From the NCBI GenBank assembly GCA_965644315.1, contig CBFFRQ010000094.1, positions 1 through 64,000 on the forward strand: 64,000 nucleotides of DNA. The letters run 5' to 3'. This document shows positions 1 through 18,977 of the stretch, in pieces; position 1 is the first letter of the stretch; every line of letters begins with the position of its first letter. The translations under genes and the position numbers were made by a program. The stretch comes from Caecitellus pseudoparvulus (taxonomy: Eukaryota > Protista > Bigyra: Bicosoecida). The notes under the pieces are model-generated. The model was not told the origin of the DNA. It worked only from the letters and a program-made list of their open reading frames with translations, and did no database searches.

Positions 1-3000
1 GGTGCCCGAGAACGGCACGCTGCTGGGCCGGTACGTCACCTCAGGCACATCGCCATCGTCACGTGCCGGCAGCTCGTGCGCCTTGTACTGTGCCGCATGC
101 TCGCTGGTGCCCGAGAACGGCACGCTGCTGGGCCGGTACGTCACCTCAGGCACATCGCCATCGTCACGTGCCGGCAGCTCGTGCGCCTTGTACTGTGCCG
201 CATGCTCGCTGGTGCCCGAGAACGGCACGCTGCTGGGCCGGTACGTCACCTCAGGCACATCGCCATCGTCACGTGCCGGCAGCTCGTGCGCCTTGTACTG
301 TGCCGCATGCTCGCTGGTGCCCGAGAACGGCACGCTGCTGGGCCGGTACGTCACCTCAGGCACATCGCCATCGTCACGTGCCGGCAGCTCGTGCGCCTTG
401 TACTGTGCCGCATGCTCGCTGGTGCCCGAGAACGGCACGCTGCTGGGCCGGTACGTCACCTCAGGCACATCGCCATCGTCACGTGCCGGCAGCTCGTGCG
501 CCTTGTACTGTGCCGCATGCTCACTGGTGCCCGAGAACGGCACGCTGCTGGGCCGGTACGTCACCTCAGGCACATCGCCATCGTCACGTGCCGGCAGCTC
601 GTGCGCCTTGTACTGTGCCGCATGCTCGCTGGTGCCCGAGAACGGCACGCTGCTGGGCCGGTACGTCACCTCAGGCACATCGCCATCGTCACGTGCCGGC
701 AGCTCGTGCGCCTTGTACTGTGCCGCATGCTCGCTGGTGCCCGAGAACGGCACGCTGCTGGGCCGGTACGTCACCTCAGGCACATCGCCATCGTCACGTG
801 CCGGCAGCTCGTGCGCCTTGTACTGTGCCGCATGCTCGCTGGTGCCCGAGAACGGCACGCTGCTGGGCCGGTACGTCACCTCAGGCACATCGCCATCGTC
901 ACGTGCCGGCAGCTCGTGCGCCTTGTACTGTGCCGCATGCTCACTGGTGCCCGAGAACGGCACGCTGCTGGGCCGGTACGTCACCTCAGGCACATCGCCA
1001 TCGTCACGTGCCGGCAGCTCGTGCGCCTTGTACTGTGCCGCATGCTCGCTGGTGCCCGAGAACGGCACGCTGCTGGGCCGGTACGTCACCTCAGGCACAT
1101 CGCCATCGTCACGTGCCGGCAGCTCGTGCGCCTTGTACTGTGCCGCATGCTCGCTGGTGCCCGAGAACGGCACGCTGCTGGGCCGGTACGTCACCTCAGG
1201 CACATCGCCATCGTCACGTGCCGGCAGCTCGTGCGCCTTGTACTGTGCCGCATGCTCGCTGGTGCCCGAGAACGGCACGCTGCTGGGCCGGTACGTCACC
1301 TCAGGCACATCGCCATCGTCACGTGCCGGCAGCTCGTGCGCCTTGTACTGTGCCGCATGCTCGCTGGTGCCCGAGAACGGCACGCTGCTGGGCCGGTACG
1401 TCACCTCAGGCACATCGCCATCGTCACGTGCCGGCAGCTCGTGCGCCTTGTACTGTGCCGCATGCTCGCTGGTGCCCGAGAACGGCACGCTGCTGGGCCG
1501 GTACGTCACCTCAGGCACATCGCCATCGTCACGTGCCGGCAGCTCGTGCGCCTTGTACTGTGCCGCATGCTCGCTGGTGCCCGAGAACGGCACGCTGCTG
1601 GGCCGGTACGTCACCTCAGGCACATCGCCATCGTCACGTGCCGGCAGCTCGTGCGCCTTGTACTGTGCCGCATGCTCGCTGGTGCCCGAGAACGGCACGC
1701 TGCTGGGCCGGTACGTCACCTCAGGCACATCGCCATCGTCACGTGCCGGCAGCTCGTGCGCCTTGTACTGTGCCGCATGCTCGCTGGTGCCCGAGAACGG
1801 CACGCTGCTGGGCCGGTACGTCACCTCAGGCACATCGCCATCGTCACGTGCCGGCAGCTCGTGCGCCTTGTACTGTGCCGCATGCTCACTGGTGCCCGAG
1901 AACGGCACGCTGCTGGGCCGGTACGTCACCTCAGGCACATCGCCATCGTCACGTGCCGGCAGCTCGTGCGCCTTGTACTGTGCCGCATGCTCACTGGTGC
2001 CCGAGAACGGCACGCTGCTGGGCCGGTACGTCACCTCAGGCACATCGCCATCGTCACGTGCCGGCAGCTCGTGCGCCTTGTACTGTGCCGCATGCTCACT
2101 GGTGCCCGAGAACGGCACGCTGCTGGGCCGGTACGTCACCTCAGGCACATCGCCATCGTCACGTGCCGGCAGCTCGTGCGCCTTGTACTGTGCCGCATGC
2201 TCGCTGGTGCCCGAGAACGGCACGCTGCTGGGCCGGTACGTCACCTCAGGCACATCGCCATCGTCACGTGCCGGCAGCTCGTGCGCCTTGTACTGTGCCG
2301 CATGCTCGCTGGTGCCCGAGAACGGCACGCTGCTGGGCCGGTACGTCACCTCAGGCACATCGCCATCGTCACGTGCCGGCAGCTCGTGCGCCTTGTACTG
2401 TGCCGCATGCTCGCTGGTGCCCGAGAACGGCACGCTGCTGGGCCGGTACGTCACCTCAGGCACATCGCCATCGTCACGTGCCGGCAGCTCGTGCGCCTTG
2501 TACTGTGCCGCATGCTCGCTGGTGCCCGAGAACGGCACGCTGCTGGGCCGGTACGTCACCTCAGGCACATCGCCATCGTCACGTGCCGGCAGCTCGTGCG
2601 CCTTGTACTGTGCCGCATGCTCGCTGGTGCCCGAGAACGGCACGCTGCTGGGCCGGTACGTCACCTCAGGCACATCGCCATCGTCACGTGCCGGCAGCTC
2701 GTGCGCCTTGTACTGTGCCGCATGCTCGCTGGTGCCCGAGAACGGCACGCTGCTGGGCCGGTACGTCACCTCAGGCACATCGCCATCGTCACGTGCCGGC
2801 AGCTCGTGCGCCTTGTACTGTGCCGCATGCTCGCTGGTGCCCGAGAACGGCACGCTGCTGGGCCGGTACGTCACCTCAGGCACATCGCCATCGTCACGTG
2901 CCGGCAGCTCGTGCGCCTTGTACTGTGCCGCATGCTCACTGGTGCCCGAGAACGGCACGCTGCTGGGCCGGTACGTCACCTCAGGCACATCGCCATCGTC

Positions 3001-6000
3001 ACGTGCCGGCAGCTCGTGCGCCTTGTACTGTGCCGCATGCTCGCTGGTGCCCGAGAACGGCACGCTGCTGGGCCGGTACGTCACCTCAGGCACATCGCCA
3101 TCGTCACGTGCCGGCAGCTCGTGCGCCTTGTACTGTGCCGCATGCTCGCTGGTGCCCGAGAACGGCACGCTGCTGGGCCGGTACGTCACCTCAGGCACAT
3201 CGCCATCGTCACGTGCCGGCAGCTCGTGCGCCTTGTACTGTGCCGCATGCTCGCTGGTGCCCGAGAACGGCACGCTGCTGGGCCGGTACGTCACCTCAGG
3301 CACATCGCCATCGTCACGTGCCGGCAGCTCGTGCGCCTTGTACTGTGCCGCATGCTCGCTGGTGCCCGAGAACGGCACGCTGCTGGGCCGGTACGTCACC
3401 TCAGGCACATCGCCATCGTCACGTGCCGGCAGCTCGTGCGCCTTGTACTGTGCCGCATGCTCGCTGGTGCCCGAGAACGGCACGCTGCTGGGCCGGTACG
3501 TCACCTCAGGCACATCGCCATCGTCACGTGCCGGCAGCTCGTGCGCCTTGTACTGTGCCGCATGCTCGCTGGTGCCCGAGAACGGCACGCTGCTGGGCCG
3601 GTACGTCACCTCAGGCACATCGCCATCGTCACGTGCCGGCAGCTCGTGCGCCTTGTACTGTGCCGCATGCTCGCTGGTGCCCGAGAACGGCACGCTGCTG
3701 GGCCGGTACGTCACCTCAGGCACATCGCCATCGTCACGTGCCGGCAGCTCGTGCGCCTTGTACTGTGCCGCATGCTCACTGGTGCCCGAGAACGGCACGC
3801 TGCTGGGCCGGTACGTCACCTCAGGCACATCGCCATCGTCACGTGCCGGCAGCTCGTGCGCCTTGTACTGTGCCGCATGCTCGCTGGTGCCCGAGAACGG
3901 CACGCTGCTGGGCCGGTACGTCACCTCAGGCACATCGCCATCGTCACGTGCCGGCAGCTCGTGCGCCTTGTACTGTGCCGCATGCTCGCTGGTGCCCGAG
4001 AACGGCACGCTGCTGGGCCGGTACGTCACCTCAGGCACATCGCCATCGTCACGTGCCGGCAGCTCGTGCGCCTTGTACTGTGCCGCATGCTCGCTGGTGC
4101 CCGAGAACGGCACGCTGCTGGGCCGGTACGTCACCTCAGGCACATCGCCATCGTCACGTGCCGGCAGCTCGTGCGCCTTGTACTGTGCCGCATGCTCGCT
4201 GGTGCCCGAGAACGGCACGCTGCTGGGCCGGTACGTCACCTCAGGCACATCGCCATCGTCACGTGCCGGCAGCTCGTGCGCCTTGTACTGTGCCGCATGC
4301 TCGCTGGTGCCCGAGAACGGCACGCTGCTGGGCCGGTACGTCACCTCAGGCACATCGCCATCGTCACGTGCCGGCAGCTCGTGCGCCTTGTACTGTGCCG
4401 CATGCTCGCTGGTGCCCGAGAACGGCACGCTGCTGGGCCGGTACGTCACCTCAGGCACATCGCCATCGTCACGTGCCGGCAGCTCGTGCGCCTTGTACTG
4501 TGCCGCATGCTCGCTGGTGCCCGAGAACGGCACGCTGCTGGGCCGGTACGTCACCTCAGGCACATCGCCATCGTCACGTGCCGGCAGCTCGTGCGCCTTG
4601 TACTGTGCCGCATGCTCACTGGTGCCCGAGAACGGCACGCTGCTGGGCCGGTACGTCACCTCAGGCACATCGCCATCGTCACGTGCCGGCAGCTCGTGCG
4701 CCTTGTACTGTGCCGCATGCTCGCTGGTGCCCGAGAACGGCACGCTGCTGGGCCGGTACGTCACCTCAGGCACATCGCCATCGTCACGTGCCGGCAGCTC
4801 GTGCGCCTTGTACTGTGCCGCATGCTCGCTGGTGCCCGAGAACGGCACGCTGCTGGGCCGGTACGTCACCTCAGGCACATCGCCATCGTCACGTGCCGGC
4901 AGCTCGTGCGCCTTGTACTGTGCCGCATGCTCGCTGGTGCCCGAGAACGGCACGCTGCTGGGCCGGTACGTCACCTCAGGCACATCGCCATCGTCACGTG
5001 CCGGCAGCTCGTGCGCCTTGTACTGTGCCGCATGCTCGCTGGTGCCCGAGAACGGCACGCTGCTGGGCCGGTACGTCACCTCAGGCACATCGCCATCGTC
5101 ACGTGCCGGCAGCTCGTGCGCCTTGTACTGTGCCGCATGCTCGCTGGTGCCCGAGAACGGCACGCTGCTGGGCCGGTACGTCACCTCAGGCACATCGCCA
5201 TCGTCACGTGCCGGCAGCTCGTGCGCCTTGTACTGTGCCGCATGCTCGCTGGTGCCCGAGAACGGCACGCTGCTGGGCCGGTACGTCACCTCAGGCACAT
5301 CGCCATCGTCACGTGCCGGCAGCTCGTGCGCCTTGTACTGTGCCGCATGCTCGCTGGTGCCCGAGAACGGCACGCTGCTGGGCCGGTACGTCACCTCAGG
5401 CACATCGCCATCGTCACGTGCCGGCAGCTCGTGCGCCTTGTACTGTGCCGCATGCTCACTGGTGCCCGAGAACGGCACGCTGCTGGGCCGGTACGTCACC
5501 TCAGGCACATCGCCATCGTCACGTGCCGGCAGCTCGTGCGCCTTGTACTGTGCCGCATGCTCGCTGGTGCCCGAGAACGGCACGCTGCTGGGCCGGTACG
5601 TCACCTCAGGCACATCGCCATCGTCACGTGCCGGCAGCTCGTGCGCCTTGTACTGTGCCGCATGCTCGCTGGTGCCCGAGAACGGCACGCTGCTGGGCCG
5701 GTACGTCACCTCAGGCACATCGCCATCGTCACGTGCCGGCAGCTCGTGCGCCTTGTACTGTGCCGCATGCTCGCTGGTGCCCGAGAACGGCACGCTGCTG
5801 GGCCGGTACGTCACCTCAGGCACATCGCCATCGTCACGTGCCGGCAGCTCGTGCGCCTTGTACTGTGCCGCATGCTCGCTGGTGCCCGAGAACGGCACGC
5901 TGCTGGGCCGGTACGTCACCTCAGGCACATCGCCATCGTCACGTGCCGGCAGCTCGTGCGCCTTGTACTGTGCCGCATGCTCGCTGGTGCCCGAGAACGG

Positions 6001-6102
6001 CACGCTGCTGGGCCGGTACGTCACCTCAGGCACATCGCCATCGTCACGTGCCGGCAGCTCGTGCGCCTTGTACTGTGCCGCATGCTCGCTGGTGCCCGAG
6101 AA
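1..6102. repeat. Tandem array of a 105-bp unit, 58 full copies visible, continuing past the left edge; coding (35 aa per unit on the minus strand)
   Basis: Unit ggtgcccgag...catgctcgct repeats every 105 bp from 1 to 6090, with a partial copy to 6102. The only variant seen is G>A at unit position 103, in units 5, 9, 18, 19, 20, 28, 36, 44 and 52. Confidence 0.99.
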
Positions 6103-7236
6103 TGGAGCGGAAGGTCGAAGCTGAGATTTGTTTGAGTGTGGCATTCGGCTTCGTGGCAGCTCATGTCTGATGTAGTCATTTTGTGAAGTAGTTTTGCCCT
6201 TGAATGGAAGTGGCTTTGGTCGCGTGATAGGGCTCGGAACAATCGCTTGCCTTTCGGGCAATGTATGCCTGATGAAGTCCGCCTTGGTTGTTGTGGTGCC
6301 TTCTAGCTTTAAGTGCGAAGGCACCCAGGCTTTGTGCTCGACTGGGGTTCGAGCAAGCTCGACGTACTTCCGCGTGTACTCAGCTGTGTGCTCCGAGACT
6401 CCCTGAAATGGCTGACTGGCCCTGGAAGGGGCCGATGGGAGTTGAGTTTGTTGATCTTGTGTTGGCAGCTCGTGTCGCACGAATGCAGCAGCAGAAGTGG
6501 ACGTAGCTTCGAACTTCAATGCCGGGCGTGGCTTCACTTCCGCTTGTCTGACAGCCGCGTCCCCTGACCGGCTAGGGATTGCATGCTTCGTGAATGCAGC
6601 ACGGCTCTCGGTGATGCCGTCAAGTTTTGGTCGAGACGATGCACGTGTGGAGGACGGGACAGGAGGGGGCATAGCACGCTGCAAATCCACCCACTTCTTG
6701 TAGTACTCAGACCTGTACTCGGTGTCAGTTTGGAGGGGAGGGCGGGGCTTGCCTGAGCCTGCTCCGGTTGACACACTGCCCTTTACTGCACTGCCTGGGT
6801 CTGAGGGCAGTGCATGCTTCACAAACGCTGCCTGTGAAGTGGTAACCCCTTCGAACTTGGGGCGGCTTGGTAGGGAGCCGCGTTCAGAGTCTCGCTGGCC
6901 ATGCGAGGAGCTTGCACGTCCCTGTAGAGCGCCGTGCCCAAGGGATTTTCTGGATTCCAGGGGCCAGGGCACGTACTCTCGCTTGTACTCTGTTCGATAG
7001 GAAGGCCTGCGCCTGGCCGTGGACGGAGAGACGCGCCCAACAGAGCTAGACCTGCTGGAAACCCCAGATGGCGCAGGTGCAAGAGGTGCTGGTTGCGGTC
7101 TAAGGCGAGGGGTGGGGGTCTTGCTCCTTGTCTGAGAAGTCAGTGGGGCCGTCGGCGGAGCTGCACGGGCCACCGCCTGTTCGAAGGTCATGACACGTTT
7201 GGGAGCTGGTTCGTGCAGCGGATAGTGCGACGCCAT
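1..7236 (-). CDS. Giant SAXO/FAM154/MAP6(STOP)-like Mn-motif microtubule-stabilising protein, >2412 aa, 3' end outside the window
   Basis: Hand translation from ATG 7236 (MASHYPLHEP...) is open to base 1. The unique part has 8 diverged motifs (RTEYKREYVPW, KFEGVTTSQAAFVKH, TDTEYRSEYYKK, KLDGITESRAAFTKH, KFEATSTSAAAFVRH, PFQGVSEHTAEYTRK, KLEGTTTTKADFIRH, PFKGKTTSQNDYIRH), followed by (SEHAAQYKAHELPARDDGDVPEVTYRPSSVPFSGT)58. This fits the F-x-G-x-T/S-x-x-x-x-x-F/Y Mn-motif pattern, and the only SNP is synonymous (AGC/AGT). Confidence 0.9.
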   Translation of the reverse strand, partial: MASHYPLHEPAPKRVMTFEQAVARAAPPTAPLTSQTRSKTPTPRLRPQPAPLAPAPSGVSSRSSSVGRVSPSTARRRPSYRTEYKREYVPWPLESRKSLGHGALQGRASSSHGQRDSERGSLPSRPKFEGVTTSQAAFVKHALPSDPGSAVKGSVSTGAGSGKPRPPLQTDTEYRSEYYKKWVDLQRAMPPPVPSSTRASSRPKLDGITESRAAFTKHAIPSRSGDAAVRQAEVKPRPALKFEATSTSAAAFVRHELPTQDQQTQLPSAPSRASQPFQGVSEHTAEYTRKYVELARTPVEHKAWVPSHLKLEGTTTTKADFIRHTLPERQAIVPSPITRPKPLPFKGKTTSQNDYIRHELPRSRMPHSNKSQLRPSAPFSGTSEHAAQYKAHELPARDDGDVPEVTYRPSSVPFSGTSEHAAQYKAHELPARDDGDVPEVTYRPSSVPFSGTSEHAAQYKAHELPARDDGDVPEVTYRPSSVPFSGTSEHAAQYKAHELPARDDGDVPEVTYRPSSVPFSGTSEHAAQYKAHELPARDDGDVPEVTYRPSSVPFSGTSEHAAQYKAHELPARDDGDVPEVTYRPSSVPFSGTSEHAAQYKAHELPARDDGDVPEVTYRPSSVPFSGTSEHAAQYKAHELPARDDGDVPEVTYRPSSVPFSGTSEHAAQYKAHELPARDDGDVPEVTYRPSSVPFSGTSEHAAQYKAHELPARDDGDVPEVTYRPSSVPFSGTSEHAAQYKAHELPARDDGDVPEVTYRPSSVPFSGTSEHAAQYKAHELPARDDGDVPEVTYRPSSVPFSGTSEHAAQYKAHELPARDDGDVPEVTYRPSSVPFSGTSEHAAQYKAHELPARDDGDVPEVTYRPSSVPFSGTSEHAAQYKAHELPARDDGDVPEVTYRPSSVPFSGTSEHAAQYKAHELPARDDGDVPEVTYRPSSVPFSGTSEHAAQYKAHELPARDDGDVPEVTYRPSSVPFSGTSEHAAQYKAHELPARDDGDVPEVTYRPSSVPFSGTSEHAAQYKAHELPARDDGDVPEVTYRPSSVPFSGTSEHAAQYKAHELPARDDGDVPEVTYRPSSVPFSGTSEHAAQYKAHELPARDDGDVPEVTYRPSSVPFSGTSEHAAQYKAHELPARDDGDVPEVTYRPSSVPFSGTSEHAAQYKAHELPARDDGDVPEVTYRPSSVPFSGTSEHAAQYKAHELPARDDGDVPEVTYRPSSVPFSGTSEHAAQYKAHELPARDDGDVPEVTYRPSSVPFSGTSEHAAQYKAHELPARDDGDVPEVTYRPSSVPFSGTSEHAAQYKAHELPARDDGDVPEVTYRPSSVPFSGTSEHAAQYKAHELPARDDGDVPEVTYRPSSVPFSGTSEHAAQYKAHELPARDDGDVPEVTYRPSSVPFSGTSEHAAQYKAHELPARDDGDVPEVTYRPSSVPFSGTSEHAAQYKAHELPARDDGDVPEVTYRPSSVPFSGTSEHAAQYKAHELPARDDGDVPEVTYRPSSVPFSGTSEHAAQYKAHELPARDDGDVPEVTYRPSSVPFSGTSEHAAQYKAHELPARDDGDVPEVTYRPSSVPFSGTSEHAAQYKAHELPARDDGDVPEVTYRPSSVPFSGTSEHAAQYKAHELPARDDGDVPEVTYRPSSVPFSGTSEHAAQYKAHELPARDDGDVPEVTYRPSSVPFSGTSEHAAQYKAHELPARDDGDVPEVTYRPSSVPFSGTSEHAAQYKAHELPARDDGDVPEVTYRPSSVPFSGTSEHAAQYKAHELPARDDGDVPEVTYRPSSVPFSGTSEHAAQYKAHELPARDDGDVPEVTYRPSSVPFSGTSEHAAQYKAHELPARDDGDVPEVTYRPSSVPFSGTSEHAAQYKAHELPARDDGDVPEVTYRPSSVPFSGTSEHAAQYKAHELPARDDGDVPEVTYRPSSVPFSGTSEHAAQYKAHELPARDDGDVPEVTYRPSSVPFSGTSEHAAQYKAHELPARDDGDVPEVTYRPSSVPFSGTSEHAAQYKAHELPARDDGDVPEVTYRPSSVPFSGTSEHAAQYKAHELPARDDGDVPEVTYRPSSVPFSGTSEHAAQYKAHELPARDDGDVPEVTYRPSSVPFSGTSEHAAQYKAHELPARDDGDVPEVTYRPSSVPFSGTSEHAAQYKAHELPARDDGDVPEVTYRPSSVPFSGTSEHAAQYKAHELPARDDGDVPEVTYRPSSVPFSGTSEHAAQYKAHELPARDDGDVPEVTYRPSSVPFSGTSEHAAQYKAHELPARDDGDVPEVTYRPSSVPFSGTSEHAAQYKAHELPARDDGDVPEVTYRPSSVPFSGTSEHAAQYKAHELPARDDGDVPEVTYRPSSVPFSGTSEHAAQYKAHELPARDDGDVPEVTYRPSSVPFSGTSEHAAQYKAHELPARDDGDVPEVTYRPSSVPFSGT

Positions 7237-7780
7237 GATGCTATTCGAGTATCTGCGAACGCAGAGCAAGGAGGAATGGTGCAGTATTTAGAGTTACAGG
7301 GTGGTGTGACATGCAGTCGCCTTTCGAGGCGTGGGACAGCCCCTGGCGACTGCCAGCTGTGCGGAGGCGACGCTGGTCCCAGTTGCTCCTACTGCACTGC
7401 CTCAGCCTGGAGTTGCACATGCTGGATCTCAGCGCTCTCAGCTCTGAGCAGAACAAAGCTACGACGTACGAGGGTAAGGACTCTGTCGAATATTGCTTGT
7501 GATTCTAGTGGACGAAGTAGGGACCAGGAGGCCTGGTTTTTCTCAGGCTTCACCTGCAGAAGGTGGTGGCAATTTCCGCAGTGCGCCGAGCAGGCTCAAG
7601 AGCCACCCGTCGACTCGTACACGAACACCACATTCAACTTCATGAAAAAATAAAGCAAACACACTGTCGTTAGCCTTGAGGGTCGTCATTGTTTTGACTC
7701 AGCGCTCCATATTTGCGCTGGAGGGGTGTGCGCAATCTGCCGATGTGGTGGGGCTTCGTCCCTCACTCTAGTTCAGCTGC

Positions 7781-8310
7781 ATGGACACATCCGCCCCTTG
7801 CACTGCCATCGTCCGGCGCACGCCAAAGGCAAGTGGTGCAGCAGACGTGCAAGCACATTTACCTGCCCAGCACAGTCCTCTGCGTGGAAAGTCTCTGCCA
7901 GAGGCGTGTTGGAGGGAGGTGTTTCGATGGCTGGAAGGCTGGGATCGAGCGCGCGGCTTCGGGCAGACGGCCAAGGTGCGCCCTGGCGATGACTTTAGGT
8001 GACAACCACTGTAGTTGCATGCATGCATTCATCTCGCAGGTAGCGGCTTCGTTTCTGGCGAGTGACGGCCTGTGGCGCGAGGCTTGCATGAACGAGTGAG
8101 TCGTTCGAGCGCCAGAACCTTACCTGAGCTGCGACGAGTGCCAAATCGATTCGCGCACCCCTTGGCAGATTCGGCACGGACCCTTGCTGTGGCCAGGGCG
8201 GCGAAGGCGCAGCAAAGCAGCTGTACACAGTGCAGTACCGCGCTCTGCGCTTCATTGCCTCGGAGGGTGCCGCGTCGGCGCAGCAGCCTACCGCACATGC
8301 TGAAGCCTGA
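7781..8310 (+). CDS. Small F-box protein, 130 aa, 3 exons (7781-7975, 8040-8095, 8169-8310)
   Basis: GT-AG introns 7976-8039 and 8096-8168 join SLPEACWREVFRWLEGWDRARGFGQTAK|VAASFLASDGLWREACMNE|FGTDP...AKQLY. This matches the F-box pattern LP..W..VF..L......LW...C...FG...K.LY. Confidence 0.7.
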
Positions 8311-10146
8311 GCTGGGTGGGCAGCTGAGCTGGTACCTCTGCGACCGCACTAGCCCCGCTCCAGTCTTGACCCACAGCATAGGCCAAGTGGCTGCCCGAGG
8401 GGCTCCACTGCACTGCCGTCACACCACCCCCCAGAGCTGTGACTTGCTTGGCTGCTCTGCGTTGACCCAGGTCCCAAATGGTCAGCGCTCCGTCCCCACC
8501 GCCAGATGCCAGTACGTTGGCCCTGCTGCTGTGCGGGTTCCACGCCAGGCAATTCACGGGGAAGCGGATGCGGGCATCCTGCTTGTACTCCCCCTGTGGC
8601 GTGCGGCTGTGGCAGTTGAAACTGGTGACCTGGGACGTCTGCACTGCTGACCCGCCAACTGCGACGGGCTGCACGAGAATGCGCCCACCGACACTGCCGA
8701 CAGCCCACCGCGACCCGGCCGGATCAACCGCCAAGCTGCGTGTCTGGTGTGGCAGGGGGGACTGATCCACATGCACAGCGGCCTCTGGCATACGTGACGC
8801 GTCAAACGTCAGAATCTGCCGTTCCGCTGTCGCCACTTGCAGGACGCTGCCGCCTGCGGCCATGGCGTATACTCGCTCTTTCAGGACGCTGCCGGGAATG
8901 CTACCTGCCGGGGTGGCCTGACGCAAGTCCCAGAAATTCAGCACACCGTCCCAGCCCCCAGTAGCCACGAGGCCGGCTTGCTGAAGCATGAGCATACACC
9001 GAATTGTGCCGGAGTGCTGTGAAGGGGGACCGAGTTGGCGTGTATCGTGCGCTTGTAGGTGCTCCGACAGAGTGGTGACTCACCCGACCCACTTCCCTTT
9101 GCTGCCCTGTACCTGTATCCATGGCGACAATGGTCTTGGCAGCACCACCGACGAGAAGCGTCGAGCCATCCTGAGCGGGGCGGAGGTGGATGTGTGCATG
9201 CCTGGGAACTGGCGCGGAGCGCAGTGAGACACGCACTGGCGTCCAAGTGGAGCACATGATCACATCTTGGTAATCAAGTGACGCGGCAAGGCTGCCCGCC
9301 GCCGCGTCAAACAAGTGAGCCTGTGAGGGGAGAAGTCCACGCTGAGCTCCAGTCAATTTCCGCATTCGTCGGCTTGCTCACCTTTCCGTCCCAGCCTCCA
9401 ACTGCAACATGGCTCTCAGCAGGATGCCAAGAAATCGTTTGAATGGTATCTGTCCCATCTGGTAACGCTATCTGTGGGTCCGAGTTCTGCCCAGACCGGT
9501 GCGACACGGCAGTCCGTTTCGCTTGCGCAACTTGTTGATCAGACGTGGACGCCGCCGCGCCAGCATGCTGCTGCTGCTGCCCAATCATGCCCATGCCGAT
9601 GCCTCCAGTCTGGCCCATGCCGATGCCTCCAGTCTGGCCCATGCCGATGCCTCCAGTCTGGCCCATGCCGATGCCTCCAGTCTGGCCCATGCCGATGCCT
9701 CCAGTCTGGCCCATGCCGATGCCTCCAGTCTGGCCCATGCCGATGCCTCCAGTCTGGCCCATGCCGATGCCTCCAGTCTGGCCCATGCCGATGCCTCCAG
9801 TCTGGCCCATGCCGATGCCTCCAGTCTGGCCCATGCCAATGCCTCCAGTCTGGCCCATGCCGATGCCGCCTGTCTGGCCCATGCCGATGCCGCCTGTCTG
9901 GCCCATGCCGATGCCGCCTGTCTGGCCCATGCCGATGCCTCCAGTCTGGCCCATGCCGATGCCGCCTGTCTGGCCCATGCCAATGCCTCCAGTCTGGCCC
10001 ATGCCGATGCCGCCTGTCTGGCCCATGCCAATGCCTCCAGTCTGGCCCATGCCGATGCCTCCAGTCTGGCCCATGCCGATGCCTCCAGTCTGGCCCATGC
10101 CGATGCCTGCTGAGGCTCCGCGTGGAGCGCCTAGCACACCGAGCAT
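8288..10146 (-). CDS. RAE1: Rae1/Gle2-like (Rae1/Bub3 family) WD40 protein with N-terminal GIGMGQTG repeats, 4 exons
   Basis: Introns 9321-9381, 9171-9236 and 9017-9083 restore the frame. Motifs DTIQTISWHP, VGGWDGK, ATGGWDG..NFWDLRQ, ERVYAM, SPLPHQTR, FNCH, FPVN, SGGGDG and AYAVGQDWS are present. It may be a divergent paralog, and the start codon is uncertain. Confidence 0.8.
9589..10107. repeat. 24-bp coding tandem repeat, 21 full copies (GIGMGQTG on the minus strand)
   Basis: Unit gccgatgcctccagtctggcccat. Variants (gccgcctgtc, gccaat) are synonymous in the Rae1-like frame. Confidence 0.97.
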
Positions 10147-10281
10147 GGCGCCAGACACAAAAACTTGATGGTCAAAAATCAAACTCGATGCACAACAAGT
10201 AGGGTATTATGTAGATGTGTGTTTGGTTTTGTGCACGCGCTGTGACTGCAGGTGTGTCGGCACGCCGACTGCTGGCAGAGC

Positions 10282-12178
10282 ATGGCAAGCACCCCTCCTG
10301 ATGCTGGTGTATGCATCGGCCAGCGGGTTGCGGACAAGAGCTCATTCAAAGGAACTGTTAGATATGTTGGGCCGGTCGCAACGTCGAAGAACCCAGACAC
10401 AGTGTATGCAGGTAGGCGGCTGCTGCGGGCTGGGAAGATGAGGCAGTTTCCGCACCACGCTACGGTCCCTCGCAGGGATCGAGTGGGACGAGGCAGGTCG
10501 AGGCAAGAACGATGGGTCTGTCACCACAAAGGATGGGGTTGAGCATCGCTACTTCACCTGCAGCCCCGCACAAGGGTCGTTCCTGAAGGTGCCCTTGCTG
10601 GACACTGGCTCGGACCTGGTAACGGCACTGCATGAGCGATACGTAGCTGCGCCGGACGCAGACATTGACACAGGGGGGGAGGCCTCGGAGCCTGGCGTGC
10701 ACATCATCTTCGTGGGGAACGATCACATCAGGGCAAAGCAGCAGCTGAATCAGCTGTTCAACGTGTCTGTGAAGGGTGGCAATGTTTCCAGTGTCGGGGC
10801 TTCGCTGGGGGAGAAGTGCCCGCACCTGGTCAGCCTGGACATGAGAGAGAACTTGCTGTGGAACACCGGCGTGCTGGGCCAGCTGGGTGGTCAGCTCGCC
10901 AGCCTGGAGACTCTGAATTTGGGTGGCAATGCGCTGCAGCCGCTGGGAGACGCCGAGACGGCGTCCATGGCGGGCGCCCTCCCCAGCCTCGCAGTGCTGA
11001 TCCTGTCGCACACGGGGCTGAGCTGGCGGGACATTTGCAGTCTATCGCCCGTCGTCCCCGCCCTGCAGGAGCTGCATGTCTGTGACAACAGCTTGCGCAC
11101 GCTGGAGGGCAGCGACGGCGGTGCCTCTGGCGGCCCAGAGCCGTTCGCCAGCGTGCATACACTTGCACTGACTGACAACGAGCTGCCCTGGGAGGAGCTG
11201 GCTCGGTGTGGCACCTGGTCTGCTCTGCAGAAGCTGCATGCTGCAGGCAATGCGGTGACTGCCGTGTTGCCCCCTGGGCCTGGCGCGTTTCAGTCGCTGA
11301 CCCACCTGACTCTCACGGACAACCCCGTCACAGAGTGGTCAGGGCTGGACGCACTGGATGCCTTTCCCTGTCTGTCCTGGCTGCGGGCTGTGGACTTGCC
11401 CCTGTACAGCAGCGAAGGGCTGGGTCCGTCCCAGGCACGCATGCACCTGGTCGGGCGCCTAGCCTGCCTCGACAGCTTGAACGGCTCCACAGTGCGGCGG
11501 CGCGAACGGGCTGACTGCGAGAAGAGTTACTTGAAGCTGGCCGCAGAGGCGGTGGCGCGGCACTGCGCTGCCGGCACCATCAGTGAGCTGCTGCCAGCTC
11601 TCGCCCCGGAGGCGGGGGAGCTGCCACCAGAGGAGGCGGGCCCCGCCGCGGTGCGTGAAGGCGGCAACGAGGAGGCGGTGCAGTGGCTGCAGCAACACCA
11701 CCCTCGCTTCTTTGAGCTCAGCGCGCGGTACCGTGACTCTGTCCCCACCGCCGTGACTGCGGGAGGGGGTGCCTCGCTCGCTGGCAACACGGTCAACGTC
11801 ACCCTGCGCAGTATGGCCGGCGCCTCCAGCTTCATGAAGCCTGTGCAGCGGGCCCTGCCGCTGTCTCTGCCCGTGTCTCAGCTGGCCACCGTGGCGGCTG
11901 CCGTCTTCCGCATGGAGGATGCGGCGCTGCTGCGTCTGTCCTTCCGGGATAGTCGGGGCGCCTTCCCCACGCTCATGGAGGACCCCATGAAGCCGCTGTC
12001 CTACTACGGAGTGGCGGACGGCGGCGAAGTGCTGGTGGAAGAAGTGGAGCAGGCTGAGGCGGAGCGCCTGGCGGCTGTCGCGGCAGAGGCGGCCGCTTCC
12101 AGTGGCAGCAGGAAGGGGTGGCGTGGCAGCACCCCCCTGCCGGGGGCAGCGGGGGGGGGCGGCGGCGCCGCGCAGTGA
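10282..12178 (+). CDS. TBCE: Tubulin-specific chaperone E (CAP-Gly + LRR + ubiquitin-like), intron 10412-10475
   Basis: Splicing gives GTVRYVGPV...YAGIEWDEAGRGKNDGSV...RYFTC (CAP-Gly, GKNDG). LRRs follow (LVSLDMREN, LETLNLGGN, LQELHVCDN), then LNGSTVRRRERADCEKSYL and a UBL domain ending LSYYGVADG. Confidence 0.93.
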
Positions 12179-12228
12179 GTGGGACGCGGCAGCAATGTAT
12201 TGCAAACAGTCTGGTGTGAATGGCAGGC

Positions 12229-13103
12229 TCAGGGCTTGGGCCGCTCCTCCTTGTCCGGCGGTGGCGCCTTGACCACTGCCCCACCCTTGCTGTTGCCGCC
12301 GGGCTGGGTGGCGGAGGGCAGGGAGCCGGGTTTGCCGAAGCGGCCGTCGTAGATGCGGAAGCCGAAGACTGTGGGGGAGTAGGTGTCTGGGGAGGGGAGG
12401 TCCGCCAGGGAGGGGTACGTGAGGTAGAACAGGTGGGGGAAGGTGGGGCCGATGAAGGCGCTGTCCACCTCGCAGGCCACAGTGCGGGAGGAGCCGGCGG
12501 AAGGCGTGCCGGGCCGGTACACGTTCTTGCAGCGGGGGCAGTAGACGTGGGCCAGGCTCGAGCCAGGTTCGCTGTGCAGGCCCACAGGCAGCACGGGCCG
12601 CCCGTGGCAGCCGAGCAGGGGGCACTCGCCGAACTCCCGTTGCTGCAGCTTACACAGCATTGCCGTCATGCCGCGGGCGGTGAGGATGTACCGGGCGTGG
12701 ATGAGCCCGTACAGGTCTTTGCAGTGGGCGTACATGGGCCCTGTCCACTCCTCGGGCTCACTCTCATCTGCTGTGGCTTCGTCCAGGATCATTTGCAGGC
12801 ATGCGCGGAATTTGGGCACCACAGATCGAAGGCCATACAGGTTGAACTGGTCCTCAATGAAGCTAGCCTCCACCTCGCACAGGAACTGGTGGCCCCGTTG
12901 TCTACAGAACCACTCGATCCATGACTCGCTTGTGAACTGCGCGGACACGGGGGGCAGGAACAGTGGCATGCACCACGCAGCAACATGGCTTGTGCTTGCT
13001 GCACAGGGGGTGGGAACAGCACTCCGGGCGCCGGCTGCCCCGCTCCGGCGCCAGCCGTGAGCACCACACCTTCACGCACATCGCTCTCATTGTCCGCTGC
13101 CAT
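12229..13103 (-). CDS. CSNK2B: Casein kinase II regulatory beta subunit (5' exon structure uncertain)
   Basis: SWIEWFC..RGHQFLCEV..SFIEDQFNLYGL, LYGLIHARYILT.RG, zinc ribbon CP..GC...YCPRC..VY, and DSAFIGPTFPHLF. Probable first exon MAADNESD starts at 13103. Confidence 0.93.
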
Positions 13104-13407
13104 GGTGAAAGCTCGGCACTGTGGTGGGGGTCCAGCAGGCACGCGGGAGAAGCCCAGCAGCTGTCCTGGAAGCAGGCCGGTCAGCCAACTTCCGCAACTC
13201 CCCTTGCAGGCTTCAGGTGTGTGGATTCGGAGCGCCTGCCCTGGTGAGCTGCTGCCACAAGGCATCGACAGATACATGAACACACTTATGTGTGGGGAAA
13301 GTGATTGTGTCACACTCGCCCCTCAGCCCGCCGCAGCCCTGTGCGTGATGGGGCAGAGCTGTGACACGGCTGTGCAGTTTGAAAGGAAGTGAGTGGGCCT
13401 CGCCTGC

Positions 13408-15192
13408 CTACCCTCTGGAGCGCCGCCCACCCCCTCCGCGAGGCGCACTGCTGCGAATGGCCGCTGCCGCACTGCTGCTGCGCTCTGCAGCCTCGTCCAT
13501 GAGCAGCTCAAACTCTGGCATGCGAGACGGGCGCCAGGTAGGTGCGCCCTCACCGCCACCCCACACTGCCGCAGCACCAGAGCCCGCGACAGCCTCTGGT
13601 GCGCCGACTGCTGGCGCCATGGGGCGCGTGTGTGGCATAACAATGTCCAGCGTGTCCCCTACCAGCCGGGTCTTGCGGCGTTTGTCCGCTGCCGTGGTGG
13701 CCGTCAAGCTGGGGCTCGCATTCACCTCGATCAACCACGGCTTCAGCTCGGCGTCCAGCATGACGTCGTACCCGTACAGCTCGAAGCAGCCCAGGCCAGA
13801 GGCCATGCTGGGCTGCACGGCCAGGAGGGAGTGCCGGATGAGGGCCCGGATGGCGCCGAAGCAGCGCGCAGTGGCCTGCTCGCCCTGGCTGGCCTTCAGG
13901 TGGGCCCGGAGGCACTCCAGTGGCCACTTGCCGCCGTGTGTGACCGAGTACTCAGCACCGTGCTTCTGGATGGAGACGTTGGTGAGGTGCATGTACAGGT
14001 TGTCCAGGTCGCGCTGGGCGCCCCGTGTGGAGGACAGGGCGGTGTACGGCACAGCACAGAAGCGCGCAAAGCCACTGCGGTGGATGTAGGCTTGGAGGGG
14101 TTGCCAGGACCTGGTGAGGGAGGGGGGATGGGGGGGGTTCCAGGCCGGCTGAGCAGGGCAGCGGCGTGGCGGTGGCACTCACGTCACCAGCACATACAGG
14201 CGCAGGTCGAACTTCTTGCCGCCAACCAGCAGGGGGTTGTCGATGTACCGGCTAACGATGTACATGGAATCTAGTTTGCTGCCCCCCGATGCGAAGACGG
14301 CTGCAGCGCTGCCTTGCTTGGGCGCCACTGCGATGCCTGCTGCGCCGGTGCTCTTGCCGGAGTACGGGTGCCGGGAGCTGGAGGTGTCAGGGGGGGGGGT
14401 GTCGGCGGCCGTGGGGGGGGTGCTCGACCCAGACGGGGGCGGCCGCGTCAGGGCTCGCAGCTTGCCTGCGCTGGCAGCGTCCACGAGGAAGATGCCCTTG
14501 CCCTGCGCCTTGCCCACAGGCTTCACGATCCACACCCACGCTGCGAAGGGCGGAATTCGGTGCTGGGGCTGGCAGGGTTGCCGGTGGAGGGCACGTGGGC
14601 CCACTCACACTTGTGCCTGCACGCTTCACTGTACCACATGCCGAAGTCCTGGGGGATGTAGTAGGTGGTCGGCAGCACGTCGGGGATGTTGCGGTTGTAC
14701 TTGGCCGCTGTGCGCATATAGCGCTTCCAGTTCTTCGCGAGAAGGTCTGCTCGTTGCGTGGGAAGTGAAATTTGGCGATGTGCGACAGGCAGCGCATTCC
14801 GGGGAGGCAGCTCACCTTTCCGAGTGAGCTCATAGTGAGTGGGGAAGTGATTGATGAGCTGATGGCGCTGAACCCCGGATCTGGCACCGCCGAAGATAGA
14901 AGCAGCTGTCGGCTGTGTCGGAAAGCAAGCACAACAAGCGCAGTTTCACCAGCGTTTCGCGTGCAACGGTTGCGACACAGAAACCCACCACTGTGCTCCA
15001 GATAATGTCCCAATCGCCATCAGGCTCGTACTCCTCCTCAAACCCACGCCCTCTGAAGTTGCTCAGAATGGCAGACTTCTCGAATTCCAAGCAGAACTTG
15101 ATGCGTGGCACTGGCGCTGGGGCTGAGGCTTGCCTCGCACCCTCCCTCGCTCTACGCCTCCGCCGCTGCAGCGCAGAAGGCGCACTTGCCAT
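13408..15192 (-). CDS. TTLL1: Tubulin polyglutamylase, TTLL1/TTLL9-like, multi-exon
   Basis: Exon pieces: DWDIIW; LINHFPTHYELTRK; DLLAKNWKRY..LPTTY; WIVKP..KAQGKGIFL; YIVSRYIDNPLLVGGKKFDLRLYVLVT; (intron 14111-14182) GFARF, HLTNVSIQKH, GGKW, CFELYGYDVMLD..LKPWLIEVNASPSL. Confidence 0.92.
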
Positions 15193-15724
15193 GGCTCCGG
15201 CAGCAAGTTCCTGCCGATTGAATACAGGCAGGTGTGGCCTTGGCCAATGTGAGCGCAGGGGTGAGAAAACGCAGCCACCGCGACTGGCGCAGGTGTGTCG
15301 AAAACGTGTCCTCTGCTTTTGCACCTCGACGTGCGTTGCTCGCAACCGCAAACCGAATGAGCTGCTGGGAACGAGGGGGGGCAGGGCTTCAATAACGTGC
15401 AGCTGCTGCTGTGTTGATGTATTGTGCGGTGCATTTTGTGCCATTTCCGAGCAACTGGTAGACATATGCCAACGACAAGCAACGGAAGTCGCAACGTATG
15501 TGCAGCGATTCCCTAGAGGAAAACAAAACTAACACGTACTATGCCTCTGTACTGCAGACAGCCCTGCCAGACAAATCCAGCCACGCACCTCTGCATGCCA
15601 CACTCTAGAGCCCTTCAAGGGGATTCCCTCCTCGGCCCTGGCGCCGGGGACCAGGTTTGAGCGGGTTTGAGGGTGGAGTGGACTTGGCCTTCGTCTGCCG
15701 TGACGCTTCCATGCTGCCGGAGCC

Positions 15725-16808
15725 ATGGCTGCGAGCGGGGGGGCAGATCGCGGTGAAGGGCAGCAGGTGCTGCAGACACTGGGGCTGGTCTTTCCCAGCT
15801 GCACTGCAGATGTGCAGGCAGCGGTGCAGGCGGCAATGACTGCGCCGCTGGCCAGCTTGCCTCCTGCGCCCGCCGCGCCAGCCGTGCCGGATTTCGCAAG
15901 TCTGGAAGGCATTGAAGACAAGCTCGTGGCTGTGCAGGGAGTCATCGATGCGTTGCAGTACAACCACACCGGGAAGGCATTTTGCAGCCCGCGCAAGGAC
16001 CGGGGCCTGAATGGCGTAGTCAGCCTCGTGCGTCCCAGCGACCTTCGCCTGGGTGACTCTCCACGCCAGCCTGTGCAACTGGGCGGCCTCGCTGCCTGCA
16101 CAGGGAAAGCACATACTTGACGCTGGTCTCCCCATACAATGTGGACAGGCGGTGTTCCTCGCAGCCTTCCTCACTCATGCACACAGCGGGCTGCCGGCGC
16201 ACGGCGAACTGCCCACCTTCCAGCAGGGCCTCTGGCGCCTGCCGCTGCGCTTCAAGAGCACTGTGCTGGGGAAGGATGGAGCATGCCACAGGCACATTGT
16301 GCTGGCTGTGCGCCTGCCCAGTGGCAAGTGGGGTGCGCTGGGCATTTCGCGCCGGGCGGCGCTGGGAGCCAAGCCCTTTGCCTTCGCGGCCTTGTCGGAC
16401 TTGCTGTGGGACTATGCGCTCGCATACCGCGACGCAGGGCACGCTCTCATAAAGGCATACGTGGGCTTGCCCCTGCCTGATGGCTTGCCCAGCCATGCTG
16501 CTCTGAACTGGCGGGGTGCCGCTGTGCGGTTTCCGCGAGACTGGCTGCCGCCCCCGCACATGCCCCTGCACACGCCCACCCTGCACCGCGGGCATTGGAG
16601 TGAGTGCGCCAAGCCCATTCTGGACAACTTCGAGGCGTGTGCAGAGGACTTGTCCACCATCTGGGCGGCACGGGGTCGCTTGAAAGGCAGCCAGGTGGCT
16701 GCATTCCGCACACGGCACTGGGAAGCGCAGGAGTACTCAGGGCAGGCCAGCGTGCCTGTGGGTGCTGGGTCATCCAGCAGTGACAAGGTCAGTGGCGAGG
16801 CGCCCTGA
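15725..16808 (+). CDS. VASH: Vasohibin (tubulin tyrosine carboxypeptidase / detyrosinase), intron 16028-16103
   Basis: VQGVIDALQYNHTG, LPIQC.AVFL, RLPLRFKS, HRHIVLAV, KWGALGISRR and LSDLLWDY are collinear with vasohibin LQYNHTG / LPIKCLEAV / FRHIVL / YGALGMSRR. The Cys, His and Ser active-site residues are present. Confidence 0.92.
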
Positions 16809-17027
16809 CTTGTGCCAGGCAGTGGGGAGTGTGCTTTCCACGCTGCGTTGGCATCGCGTTCCAGGTGCAGGATTTGGGGTACTTTCGAGAAATCCGTCGG
16901 AAGAGGCGAAGAAGATGCTTAATGTAACTCGCCTCTCATTCTTCTCACGTCAACTTACGGCTGGAGGCGCGTGAGTGCCGTGGGCTGCCGAGGCCGGCGT
17001 TGCGGAAATCGGTTTGTTGCCGCTGTC

Positions 17028-18977
17028 ATGCGTGGGCGGGCCGATGGCGGCGCCAGCGCGGCTTCTCTTGGACCCTTGGCACTTGGCGCACGATTTTGCA
17101 TTGTGGGGATGCTCTTCGCTGCATGCCTCGTGCAGGGCACTCCCAGCACCTCGCAAGAGGCAGATTCAGAGCTGCTGGACCTGGGACAGTTGTCGATCTC
17201 AGCCTGGACGTCTGCAGCGTTTGCCCGCCTGCCATGCTTCGAGCGGGCCTCCTGGCACGGCAAGGGCAGACTGGTGATGGAGGGGGGCCTTGAGGCAACG
17301 GACCACGCTGCGTTTCACCACGCTGTTGTGACGTGGGACAGTGTGGAGGATCTGCTGGTCCAGGCGGCTGCCGGCGTGACACGTGACATGGCGGCGGAGG
17401 GAGCGTGGTTTCTGGAGGAGCCGGCCCTGGCAGGCGCCACACTGGCCACAGACCACCTGGTGTCTGCTCTGGGAGACCTCGACTCCACCGCCGTGAAGCC
17501 CCCCTTCGTGCAGCGAGTGGAGGTGGGCGGGGAATCTGCCAGAGTGTACGTGTGGGGTGACTTGCACGGCAGTCTGCACAGCTTCCTGCGCCACCTGGCC
17601 CTGCTGCGCCAGCGAGGGGACCTAGGCGACGACTGGGCCTTGAAGCCCGGCGTGCGGCTGGTGTTCCTGGGGGACTACGTGGACCGGGGTCCCTATGGCG
17701 TGGAGGTCATTGCAACGGCCCTGCGTCTGCGGCTGGCCAACCCTGGGGCAGTGCACATGGCACGGGGCAACCACGAAGACGAGGGCATCAATCGGGGCAG
17801 CACTTTCTGGGGCGAGCTGGTGGGCAAGTACCCCTCCACCTCCCGCCTCCGTCTGCGCCGTGTGTTCGGGTGGTACGCAACGCTGCCGCAGGCGCTCTTC
17901 CTCGCTGCACCCGGCGGCGGCAGTGCTGCTCGGAGCACGTCTTACCTGCTGGCATGCCATGGTGGGATCGAGCTGGGGCACGACCCACAGCCGTTCCTCG
18001 CGGCTGCGCTGCCCAGTCAGGGTGGGCCGGCGTTTTCCGTGTTGCCGCATTTGCAGCGGCAGACGTGGCTGACTCTTGTGCCGCCTGCCGTGGCACAAGG
18101 CGTGCCTGCGCCGCTGCGACGGCTATTCGAAGCGCCCAGTAGCTCTCACCGCACTCTCAGCGAACCTTGGGCAGTGTGGAATGTGTCCAGTGCTGCTGTG
18201 GGAGCGCAGGGGCAAGTGCAACCTGGGGCGGCGGCGTGGCCGACACGCCCCACGCAATCCCGCATCCCACACGGCTACATGTGGGCAGACTTCTTTGTGG
18301 ACGACGCCGAGACGGTGCTGGGCTACACCCCTGGTCGTGGGCCCATTCTGGGCAAGCCCCTGACCGAATGGTGGCTGGAGCGTGCTGGGGTGACCGCCAT
18401 TCTGCGTGGGCACCAGCACAACAACAACCCCGCAGCGGGCCCCATGTTGCAGCGCCTGCAGCGTCACAGGGGCCTGTACGACAACTGGGACGGTGCGGGG
18501 CTCGTGTACACTTTCCTCTCTGCCGCCGAGACGGGCGTCCTGGGCTTCAACGCGGCCAGCGTGGGGGTGCTGCAGTGGAGCGCAGAGCAAGCTGCGTGTT
18601 CTGCGCCCCCGCCCACCCAGCAGCCCCCCAACGAGTACGCGAAGCAGGCCCTTCTCCCAGGAGCATCACTGTGGCACTGTCACGGGCATGTGCCTGTGCA
18701 GCGTGTGCAGGTGGCGGGGGGCTGGCGCCGTGCGACCCGCCCCCTGAGTGTGCCTGCGCAGGATGGCGGGCCCGCCGCAGCTCAGGACAACGCGACGCAG
18801 GTGGGGTGTTTGGGGGGCAAGCCTTGGCAAGAGGTGCGGTGGGGGCCCCTTCCCCTGGTGGAGGACGGGTGGCAGGCGGGCGTCACGCACGCCTGTGAGG
18901 TGTGGCCGTTGCCAGACACGACGGGGCCGCAGGATGCGCCTCCCCCCTCCTCGCAGTGTGATCGCATTCGGGGCTAG
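17028..18977 (+). CDS. PPP-type (calcineurin-like) metallophosphoesterase with an N-terminal hydrophobic signal/anchor; intronless
   Basis: GDLHG, GDYVDRG, RGNHE, CHGG and ILRGHQH motifs, plus N-terminal FCIVGMLFAACLVQG. The start is at 17028 or the next downstream ATG. Confidence 0.88.
   Translation: MRGRADGGASAASLGPLALGARFCIVGMLFAACLVQGTPSTSQEADSELLDLGQLSISAWTSAAFARLPCFERASWHGKGRLVMEGGLEATDHAAFHHAVVTWDSVEDLLVQAAAGVTRDMAAEGAWFLEEPALAGATLATDHLVSALGDLDSTAVKPPFVQRVEVGGESARVYVWGDLHGSLHSFLRHLALLRQRGDLGDDWALKPGVRLVFLGDYVDRGPYGVEVIATALRLRLANPGAVHMARGNHEDEGINRGSTFWGELVGKYPSTSRLRLRRVFGWYATLPQALFLAAPGGGSAARSTSYLLACHGGIELGHDPQPFLAAALPSQGGPAFSVLPHLQRQTWLTLVPPAVAQGVPAPLRRLFEAPSSSHRTLSEPWAVWNVSSAAVGAQGQVQPGAAAWPTRPTQSRIPHGYMWADFFVDDAETVLGYTPGRGPILGKPLTEWWLERAGVTAILRGHQHNNNPAAGPMLQRLQRHRGLYDNWDGAGLVYTFLSAAETGVLGFNAASVGVLQWSAEQAACSAPPPTQQPPNEYAKQALLPGASLWHCHGHVPVQRVQVAGGWRRATRPLSVPAQDGGPAAAQDNATQVGCLGGKPWQEVRWGPLPLVEDGWQAGVTHACEVWPLPDTTGPQDAPPPSSQCDRIRG

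Follow-up and report, generated by a model that had tools for sequence, protein, structure and literature searches.

Do the four genes that act on tubulin in the first 17 kb (positions 1-16808) of a contig from the bicosoecid Caecitellus pseudoparvulus (CBFFRQ010000094.1, here C94) form a functional unit, or do they lie together by chance? These genes encode a giant SAXO/Mn-repeat protein, the tubulin chaperone TBCE, a TTLL1-like ligase and a vasohibin (VASH), and they are interspersed with genes for a Rae1-like WD40 protein and the beta subunit of casein kinase 2 (CK2-beta). An earlier note on this DNA had proposed that they constitute a co-regulated module for building stable flagellar or root microtubules, and had named chance co-location in a compact genome as the alternative. 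The window analysed here is the first 64 kb of C94, which belongs to a GC-rich genome assembly of 30.6 Mb in 215 contigs.

We conclude, with a probability of about 0.55, that the 17-kb grouping represents two inherited synteny blocks that were juxtaposed by rearrangement, and that no dedicated tubulin-code module is involved. Block A would comprise the TBCE, Rae1-like and CK2-beta genes, with the SAXO-like gene alongside them only in this genome. Block B would comprise the TTLL1-like and vasohibin genes arranged head to head, followed by a gene for a PPP-like phosphatase. Local rearrangements would have set the two blocks side by side here. Judged by the families to which the predicted proteins belong, each gene probably does its usual job. 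Specifically, the SAXO-like protein would line and stabilise microtubules via its Mn repeats, TBCE would aid the assembly of alpha/beta-tubulin dimers, the TTLL would add glutamates onto acidic tubulin tails, and vasohibin would remove the C-terminal Tyr or Phe carried by the alpha-tubulins of this genome.

Gene order in related genomes

The loci used for comparison reside on three metagenomic or contaminant contigs (L003, L004 (= L005 = L028) and L006) that carry the closest vasohibins (~45% identity). In all three related genomes (3/3), a TTL-family gene on the minus strand diverges from a vasohibin gene on the plus strand, which is followed on the same strand by a Metallophos gene. In this clade, 390-530 bp separate the start codons of the two divergent genes, TTLL and VASH. 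The clade phosphatase is 670-780 amino acids long, and its gene is always located 115-280 bp downstream of VASH (window 16971-18977; L003 10934-13273; L004 10880-13030; L006 5322-7400). The TTLL-VASH adjacency goes back to an ancestor that this organism shared with its three metagenomic relatives. Both flanks of the trio differ between the relatives and the window. Beyond the relatives' TTLL resides a gene for a protein of 1607-1616 amino acids, whose homologue here is on contig C13, and beyond their phosphatase reside genes for an unknown protein of ~1,000 amino acids and for CAF1.

The remaining genes of the group have a different neighbourhood in these relatives. In the same two samples, the closest TBCE homologues (55-57%) are found on other contigs (L025 and L027), where TBCE is flanked by a gene for a cadherin-like giant and one for an aminoacyl-tRNA synthetase. 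The Rae1-like and CK2-beta genes are located 6-8 kb further from TBCE, and are followed by an ABC-F gene. Contig positions imply a distance of at least 33.6 kb between TBCE and TTLL in the sister lineage, versus 1.2 kb here. No SAXO-like sequence was detected in ~80 kb of the relatives' loci around these genes. The giant gene adjoining a relative's TBCE was considered as a SAXO homologue and rejected, since it encodes a cadherin-like membrane protein whose homologue is located at 54-59 kb of the window. Thus, the linkage in relatives that the earlier note had asked about holds for TTLL-VASH(-phosphatase) in three genomes, whereas the four-gene set is split.

Genes from the relatives' contigs (L025 and L004) map to 8-28 kb, 47 kb and 54-59 kb of the window in scrambled order. 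Those at 22-28 kb, 47 kb and 54-59 kb include the ABC-F gene, the aminoacyl-tRNA synthetase gene, two unknown genes, and genes for a 763-amino-acid protein and the cadherin-like giant. Macro-synteny is kept but has been shuffled by many local inversions. About 5 of 12 adjacencies (~40%) are retained between the two lineages, among them aaRS-X-Y (where aaRS is the aminoacyl-tRNA synthetase), Z-ABCF and VASH-phosphatase. Because this many adjacencies survive, including the one between VASH and a secretory-looking phosphatase, the retention of TTLL-VASH is no evidence of selection. Its survival is explained equally well by retention at the background rate or by selection, and we infer a neutral origin of the linkage.

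Outside the clade, no TTL-family match was found in the flanks of vasohibin genes at any of ~16 informative loci, and no VASH gene adjoins the closest named TTLL, which is from Cafeteria. The literature was also searched for a published VASH/TTLL gene cluster, with no relevant result. At two algal loci outside the clade, in Chrysophaeum taylorii and in an alga with a chlorophyll a/b-binding protein gene, vasohibin adjoins an FMO-like monooxygenase gene (L007 7646-11074 and L008 10001-13037).

In the window, the TTLL and VASH genes physically share their upstream region. Metatranscriptome contigs enter the spacer between them from both sides, to 15410 and 15603, so that at most ~190 bp is uncovered. 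The corresponding spacers of the four genomes could not be aligned and have no common k-mer of 8 or more nucleotides, even among the three close relatives. The search for a conserved spacer element by alignment and k-mer counts yielded only the low-complexity sequence CTGCTGC. Similarly, k-mers shared among the regions upstream of SAXO, TBCE and TTLL/VASH are no more common than in shuffled sequences for k of at least 8. An E-box-like 7-mer, CACCTGC, is present in these upstream regions but is too weak to count. The shared upstream motifs foreseen in the earlier note were thus not found, and its co-regulated four-gene module is left with neither linkage conservation beyond the background nor a common cis-motif. 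Chance co-location in a compact genome is the better fit for the four-gene set.

Identities of the genes and their products

The features that these comparisons rely on are as follows (positions are those of the window unless another contig is named).

1-7236, minus strand: giant SAXO/Mn-repeat (MAP6-related) gene, with a unique N-terminal region of 378 amino acids (6103-7236) followed by at least 58 repeats (1-6102); runs off the start of C94
8288-10182, minus strand: Rae1/Gle2-like WD40 gene in two open reading frame (ORF) pieces; not tubulin-specific
~10321-12178, plus strand: TBCE gene, with the CAP-Gly domain split over a short exon 1 (~10321-10461) and the main exon (10466-12178), then leucine-rich repeats (LRRs) and a C-terminal tail
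12229-13103, minus strand: CK2-beta gene, with exon 2 at 12229-12936, an intron at 12937-13079 (GT..AG) and a short exon 1 ending at 13080; Pfam CK_II_beta, 198 bits
13408-~15192, minus strand: divergent TTLL1-like ligase gene of the glutamylase type, with short introns at ~14109-14182 and ~14541-14608 and at least one more toward the 5' end
15193-15724, no strand: intergenic spacer (532 bp) that separates the divergent starts of TTLL and VASH
15725-16808, plus strand: vasohibin (tubulinyl-Tyr carboxypeptidase) gene, with exon 1 at 15725-16027, an intron at 16028-16103 (GT..AG) and exon 2 at 16104-16808
16971-18977, plus strand: divergent PPP-family phosphatase gene, third of the TTLL-VASH-phosphatase trio; hydrophobic, signal-peptide-like N-terminus and no evident tubulin link
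C54:268042, C78:268127, C80:83508 and C80:86053 (L056, L057, L060 and L061): alpha- and beta-tubulin gene loci

The earlier note had named four tubulin-acting genes in 17 kb, and these identities were upheld by Pfam matches, Protein Data Bank (PDB) matches and catalytic residues. Exons were searched singly by reference, without joining, and uninterrupted ORFs of the relatives served as a proxy for the full-length TTLL. Metatranscriptome contigs carry spliced CK2-beta, TTLL and VASH sequences, in which every intron has GT..AG ends.

Exons 4 and 3 of the TTLL gene match Pfam TTL (PF03133) at 142 and 58.8 bits, respectively, and the gene product has an ATP-grasp core with conserved motifs. Two introns of the gene, each of ~70 nucleotides, are seen in the RNA contigs. 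The syntenic orthologue in a relative (L004 7599-8804), an uninterrupted ORF, is much nearer the glutamylases TTLL6/7/11 than TTL (E 5e-27 for TTLL6 versus 6e-15 for TTL). A tubulin tyrosine ligase next to vasohibin would have set both opposing activities of the tyrosination cycle side by side, but we discarded this identity because the gene product is glutamylase-like by similarity. The description of the gene as a TTLL1-like glutamylase holds for the enzyme type, and the named homologues of the L004 orthologue are mostly TTLL1. However, a quick maximum-likelihood tree places the window TTLL exon and its relatives in a long-branched group outside TTLL1 and TTLL9, with a Shimodaira-Hasegawa-like approximate likelihood ratio test (SH-aLRT) value of 96. 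Two other TTLLs of this genome (on C68 and C69) fall with TTLL9 in the same tree. Hence 'TTLL1-like' is a fair label for the predicted protein, which may or may not be an orthologue of TTLL1.

The vasohibin gene is present as a single copy in the 30.6-Mb genome. It matches Pfam PF14822 with 75.3 and 33.7 bits (cut-off 24) and retains the catalytic Cys and His and the GISRR motif, with LPIQC and HRHIVL aligning to the catalytic residues of VASH1/2. At 16128-16160, the predicted protein reads LPIQCGQAV after and around the catalytic Cys, whereas all 17 of the other aligned vasohibins that cover this motif (17/17), including the three close relatives, read C[VIL]EAV. The near-invariant Glu that follows the catalytic Cys is thus Gln in this species only, among the aligned vasohibins. 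Two alpha-tubulin genes of this genome end in ...GDEY and ...GDEF, with Glu-rich tails, and therefore a detyrosinase has substrates. Two of the three beta-tubulin genes are also Tyr-ended (...DYDVGY), like those of trypanosomatids. Trypanosomatid VASH acts on both tubulin chains.

The SAXO-like gene begins with a start codon at 7236 and stays open in one frame for at least 2,412 codons, up to the start of the contig. Its array at 1-6102 holds 58 copies of a 105-bp (35-amino-acid) unit that are 99% identical at the DNA level. Probably the assembly broke inside this array at the start of C94, such that 58 copies is a minimum. In the PDB, the gene product matches only SAXO1 ('Stabilizer of axonemal microtubules 1', 8ou0_D, E 5.7e-6). 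The Pfam SAXO1-2 (PF05217) score of 22.3 bits is under the cut-off of 26.5, yet this is still the only hit in the genome. The syntax of an Mn unit is [TS][TS]x4[YF] (PMC10973386), and the unique region holds four exact units of this type, while 64 units match a looser F-x-G-x-[ST] pattern.

TBCE is identified by a partial CAP-Gly match (34.8 bits) and LRRs, and the PDB entry that it matches best is that of tubulin-specific chaperone E (9m1k_E, E 6.5e-30). Pfam detected no ubiquitin-like domain in the window protein; homologues P0244 and P0247 carry one. Among the genes that lie between those acting on tubulin, Rae1-like is supported by a homologue in a relative (L025 17407-18306) that maps onto window 8303-9025. 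Its N-terminal part contains a 24-bp unit repeated 21.7 times (9589-10108), which encodes GIGMGQTG repeats. The CK2-beta splice joint is present in RNA contig X10. An RNA contig also links CK2-beta exon 2 to sequence extending to 13634, and thereby overlaps the last 226 nucleotides of the TTLL coding region, whose stop is at 13408. The RNA from 13080 to 13634 represents either a long CK2-beta 5' untranslated region that overlaps TTLL or read-through transcription. Six of the seven genes that had been listed for this region are recognisable. The supposed seventh, an F-box ORF at 7781-8310, gave no Pfam match at E values up to 0.1, and the stretch 7781-8311 contains three stops in one frame.

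The nearest named homologues of VASH and TTLL are from stramenopiles (Cafeteria, Chrysophaeum and Tribonema), yet these are distant. The organism is present in marine metagenomes and has motile flagella, as shown by a radial spoke protein encoded in its genome. VASH and TTLL proteins (P0001 and P0124) listed for Symbiodinium sp. KB8 are near-identical to the window proteins, with P0001 99% identical to the window VASH exon. The KB8 assembly probably contains contaminating sequence from this organism or from a strain very close to it, because these proteins closely match a 30-Mb genome, which cannot be that of the dinoflagellate.

Chance, selection or artefact

How surprising the grouping appears depends on how the gene class is drawn. 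The genome carries ~13 TTLL, 8 CAP-Gly, 1 VASH and 1 SAXO-like loci. In simulations, the probability that at least four loci of a class fall in 16.8 kb is less than 0.001 for classes of up to 60 loci, 0.007 for 130, 0.03 for 200, 0.17 for 300 and 0.70 for 500. The suggestion that gene density here is beyond chance therefore stands for small classes but not for one of 300 loci, and the class boundary was set post hoc.

Several observations weigh against the conclusion that the blocks were juxtaposed without consequence. For a narrow class (TTL, VASH, CAP-Gly and SAXO; ~24-30 loci), four loci in 16.8 kb occurred in 0 of 20,000 simulations, although this value overstates the surprise because the class was defined with the cluster already in view and a very large number of windows is scanned. 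With a single VASH gene and 13 TTLL genes in the genome, a direct VASH-TTLL adjacency would arise by chance with a probability of ~0.2%. TTLL and VASH have kept their divergent orientation and the 390-530 bp spacer while both flanks changed. In T. brucei, detyrosination and polyglutamylation reinforce each other (PMC12714142), and co-regulation of the two would be biologically sensible. Moreover, at C68:73601-76376 (L065 2102-4876), a TTLL9-like gene (393 amino acids, Pfam TTL 278 bits) is followed on the same strand, after 9 bp, by a gene for a divergent tubulin-family protein (527 amino acids, Pfam Tubulin 78 bits). This adjacency hints that tubulin genes pair in this genome more often than expected, and therefore slightly raises the odds for a selected TTLL-VASH pair. 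Finally, the comparison covers the ingroup, in which either arrangement may be the ancestral one. Apart from these cases, TTLL and CAP-Gly hits that lie 3.7 kb apart on C39 were rejected as adjacent genes or a single gene, as a gene for a PALP enzyme is located between them.

These observations bear most directly on the possibility that only the TTLL1-like/vasohibin pair is functional, whereby a selected, short bidirectional promoter co-switches glutamylation and detyrosination and the rest of the 17 kb is due to chance. The head-to-head arrangement in all four clade genomes, the stretch of at most ~190 bp that RNA contigs leave uncovered, the low odds of this adjacency for the TTLL class and the way in which both modifications reinforce each other in T. 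brucei are all consistent with such a promoter. However, ~40% of the regional adjacencies are kept anyway, among them the one joining VASH to a phosphatase that seems to be secretory and is not linked to tubulin. The conservation spans two deep lineages and thus counts as one ancestral event, no TTL gene is near VASH at the ~16 loci outside the clade, and not even the spacers of the three close relatives have a motif in common. The pair is the sole candidate for co-regulation in the 17 kb, and we consider a functional pair possible but rather doubtful. The broader proposal for this small clade of marine, GC-rich flagellates, in which selection has hard-wired the feedback between polyglutamylation and detyrosination into this pair and, together with the pair on C68, the genome is one of co-regulated tubulin-code pairs, should likewise be held only tentatively.

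That the whole 17 kb might serve as a co-regulated stable-microtubule module, with the SAXO-like, TBCE, TTLL and VASH genes in one chromatin domain for flagellar or root microtubules, appears improbable. The low simulated odds for the narrow class, the motile flagella indicated by the radial spoke protein, and the Tyr/Phe-ended and Glu-rich tubulin tails would all accord with such a module. Against this, the four-gene set is distributed over at least two contigs and separated by at least 33.6 kb in the sister lineage, the SAXO-like gene was not found in the ~80 kb of the relatives' neighbourhoods, housekeeping genes are interleaved with the tubulin genes, and no common upstream motif was recovered. 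For a class of 300 microtubule and axoneme genes, chosen after the fact, such a cluster is expected with P ~0.17 per genome. More improbable still is that the cluster is an annotation or assembly artefact, created by misidentified genes or by a chimeric contig end at the repeat array. The position of the SAXO-like array at the very start of C94, its 99%-identical repeats, which are hard to assemble, the Pfam SAXO1-2 score under its cut-off and the unsupported F-box ORF might raise this concern. Yet independent public runs contain 64-86% of the sampled words from 12200-17000, spliced RNA contigs support three genes, near-identical VASH and TTLL proteins are present in the independent KB8 assembly, and the non-repetitive stretch of the SAXO-like gene (6103-7236) continues without a break into the remainder of the window. 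Juxtaposition of two inherited blocks remains our preferred explanation.

Relation to known systems and meaning

In having TTLL and VASH starts 532 bp apart on opposite strands, with products predicted to act on the same tubulin C-terminal tails and an arrangement kept across the clade, the pair is similar to eukaryotic bidirectional gene pairs of related function. Unlike such pairs, its spacer has no conserved element and its retention is no better than the local background, and this candidate pair is known only in a small clade. Vasohibin shares the Pfam domain, the catalytic Cys and His, and GISRR with VASH1/2 and trypanosomatid VASH, and Tyr/Phe-ended alpha-tubulins are encoded in the genome, but it carries CGQ in place of the near-invariant C[VIL]E, and the likeness is at the level of sequence. 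The TTLL has the TTL ATP-grasp core, TTLL1 as its best named hits, and greater proximity to glutamylases than to TTL, as would be expected of a relative of the TTLL1/TTLL9 polyglutamylases, whereas its long-branched group lies outside both clades.

With the SAXO/MAP6 proteins (SAXO1, TbSAXO, SPM1 and FAP363), the SAXO-like protein shares a unit, F-x-G-x-T-T-x3-[DA]-[FY]-x2-H, that recurs every ~35 amino acids (PMC10973386, PMC3280300). It differs from SAXO1 in having at least 58 near-identical tandem units (>2,400 amino acids) rather than ~10-12. It also differs from the family in that its array unit, TSEHAAQY, is one residue off the published syntax and its Pfam score is under the cut-off. 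TBCE follows the known architecture of a CAP-Gly domain and then LRRs, with a strong match to solved TBCE and homologues that carry a ubiquitin-like domain, but this last domain went undetected by Pfam in the window protein.

Had the four genes formed a true co-regulated module, they would be a rare case in eukaryotes of non-homologous genes clustered around the tubulin code, but the evidence is not supportive. Compact genomes with retained macro-synteny can yield groupings that are functionally convincing yet spurious. What remains is an old head-to-head pair of a glutamylase-type and a detyrosinase gene, which offers a simple handle on the coordination of two tubulin modifications.

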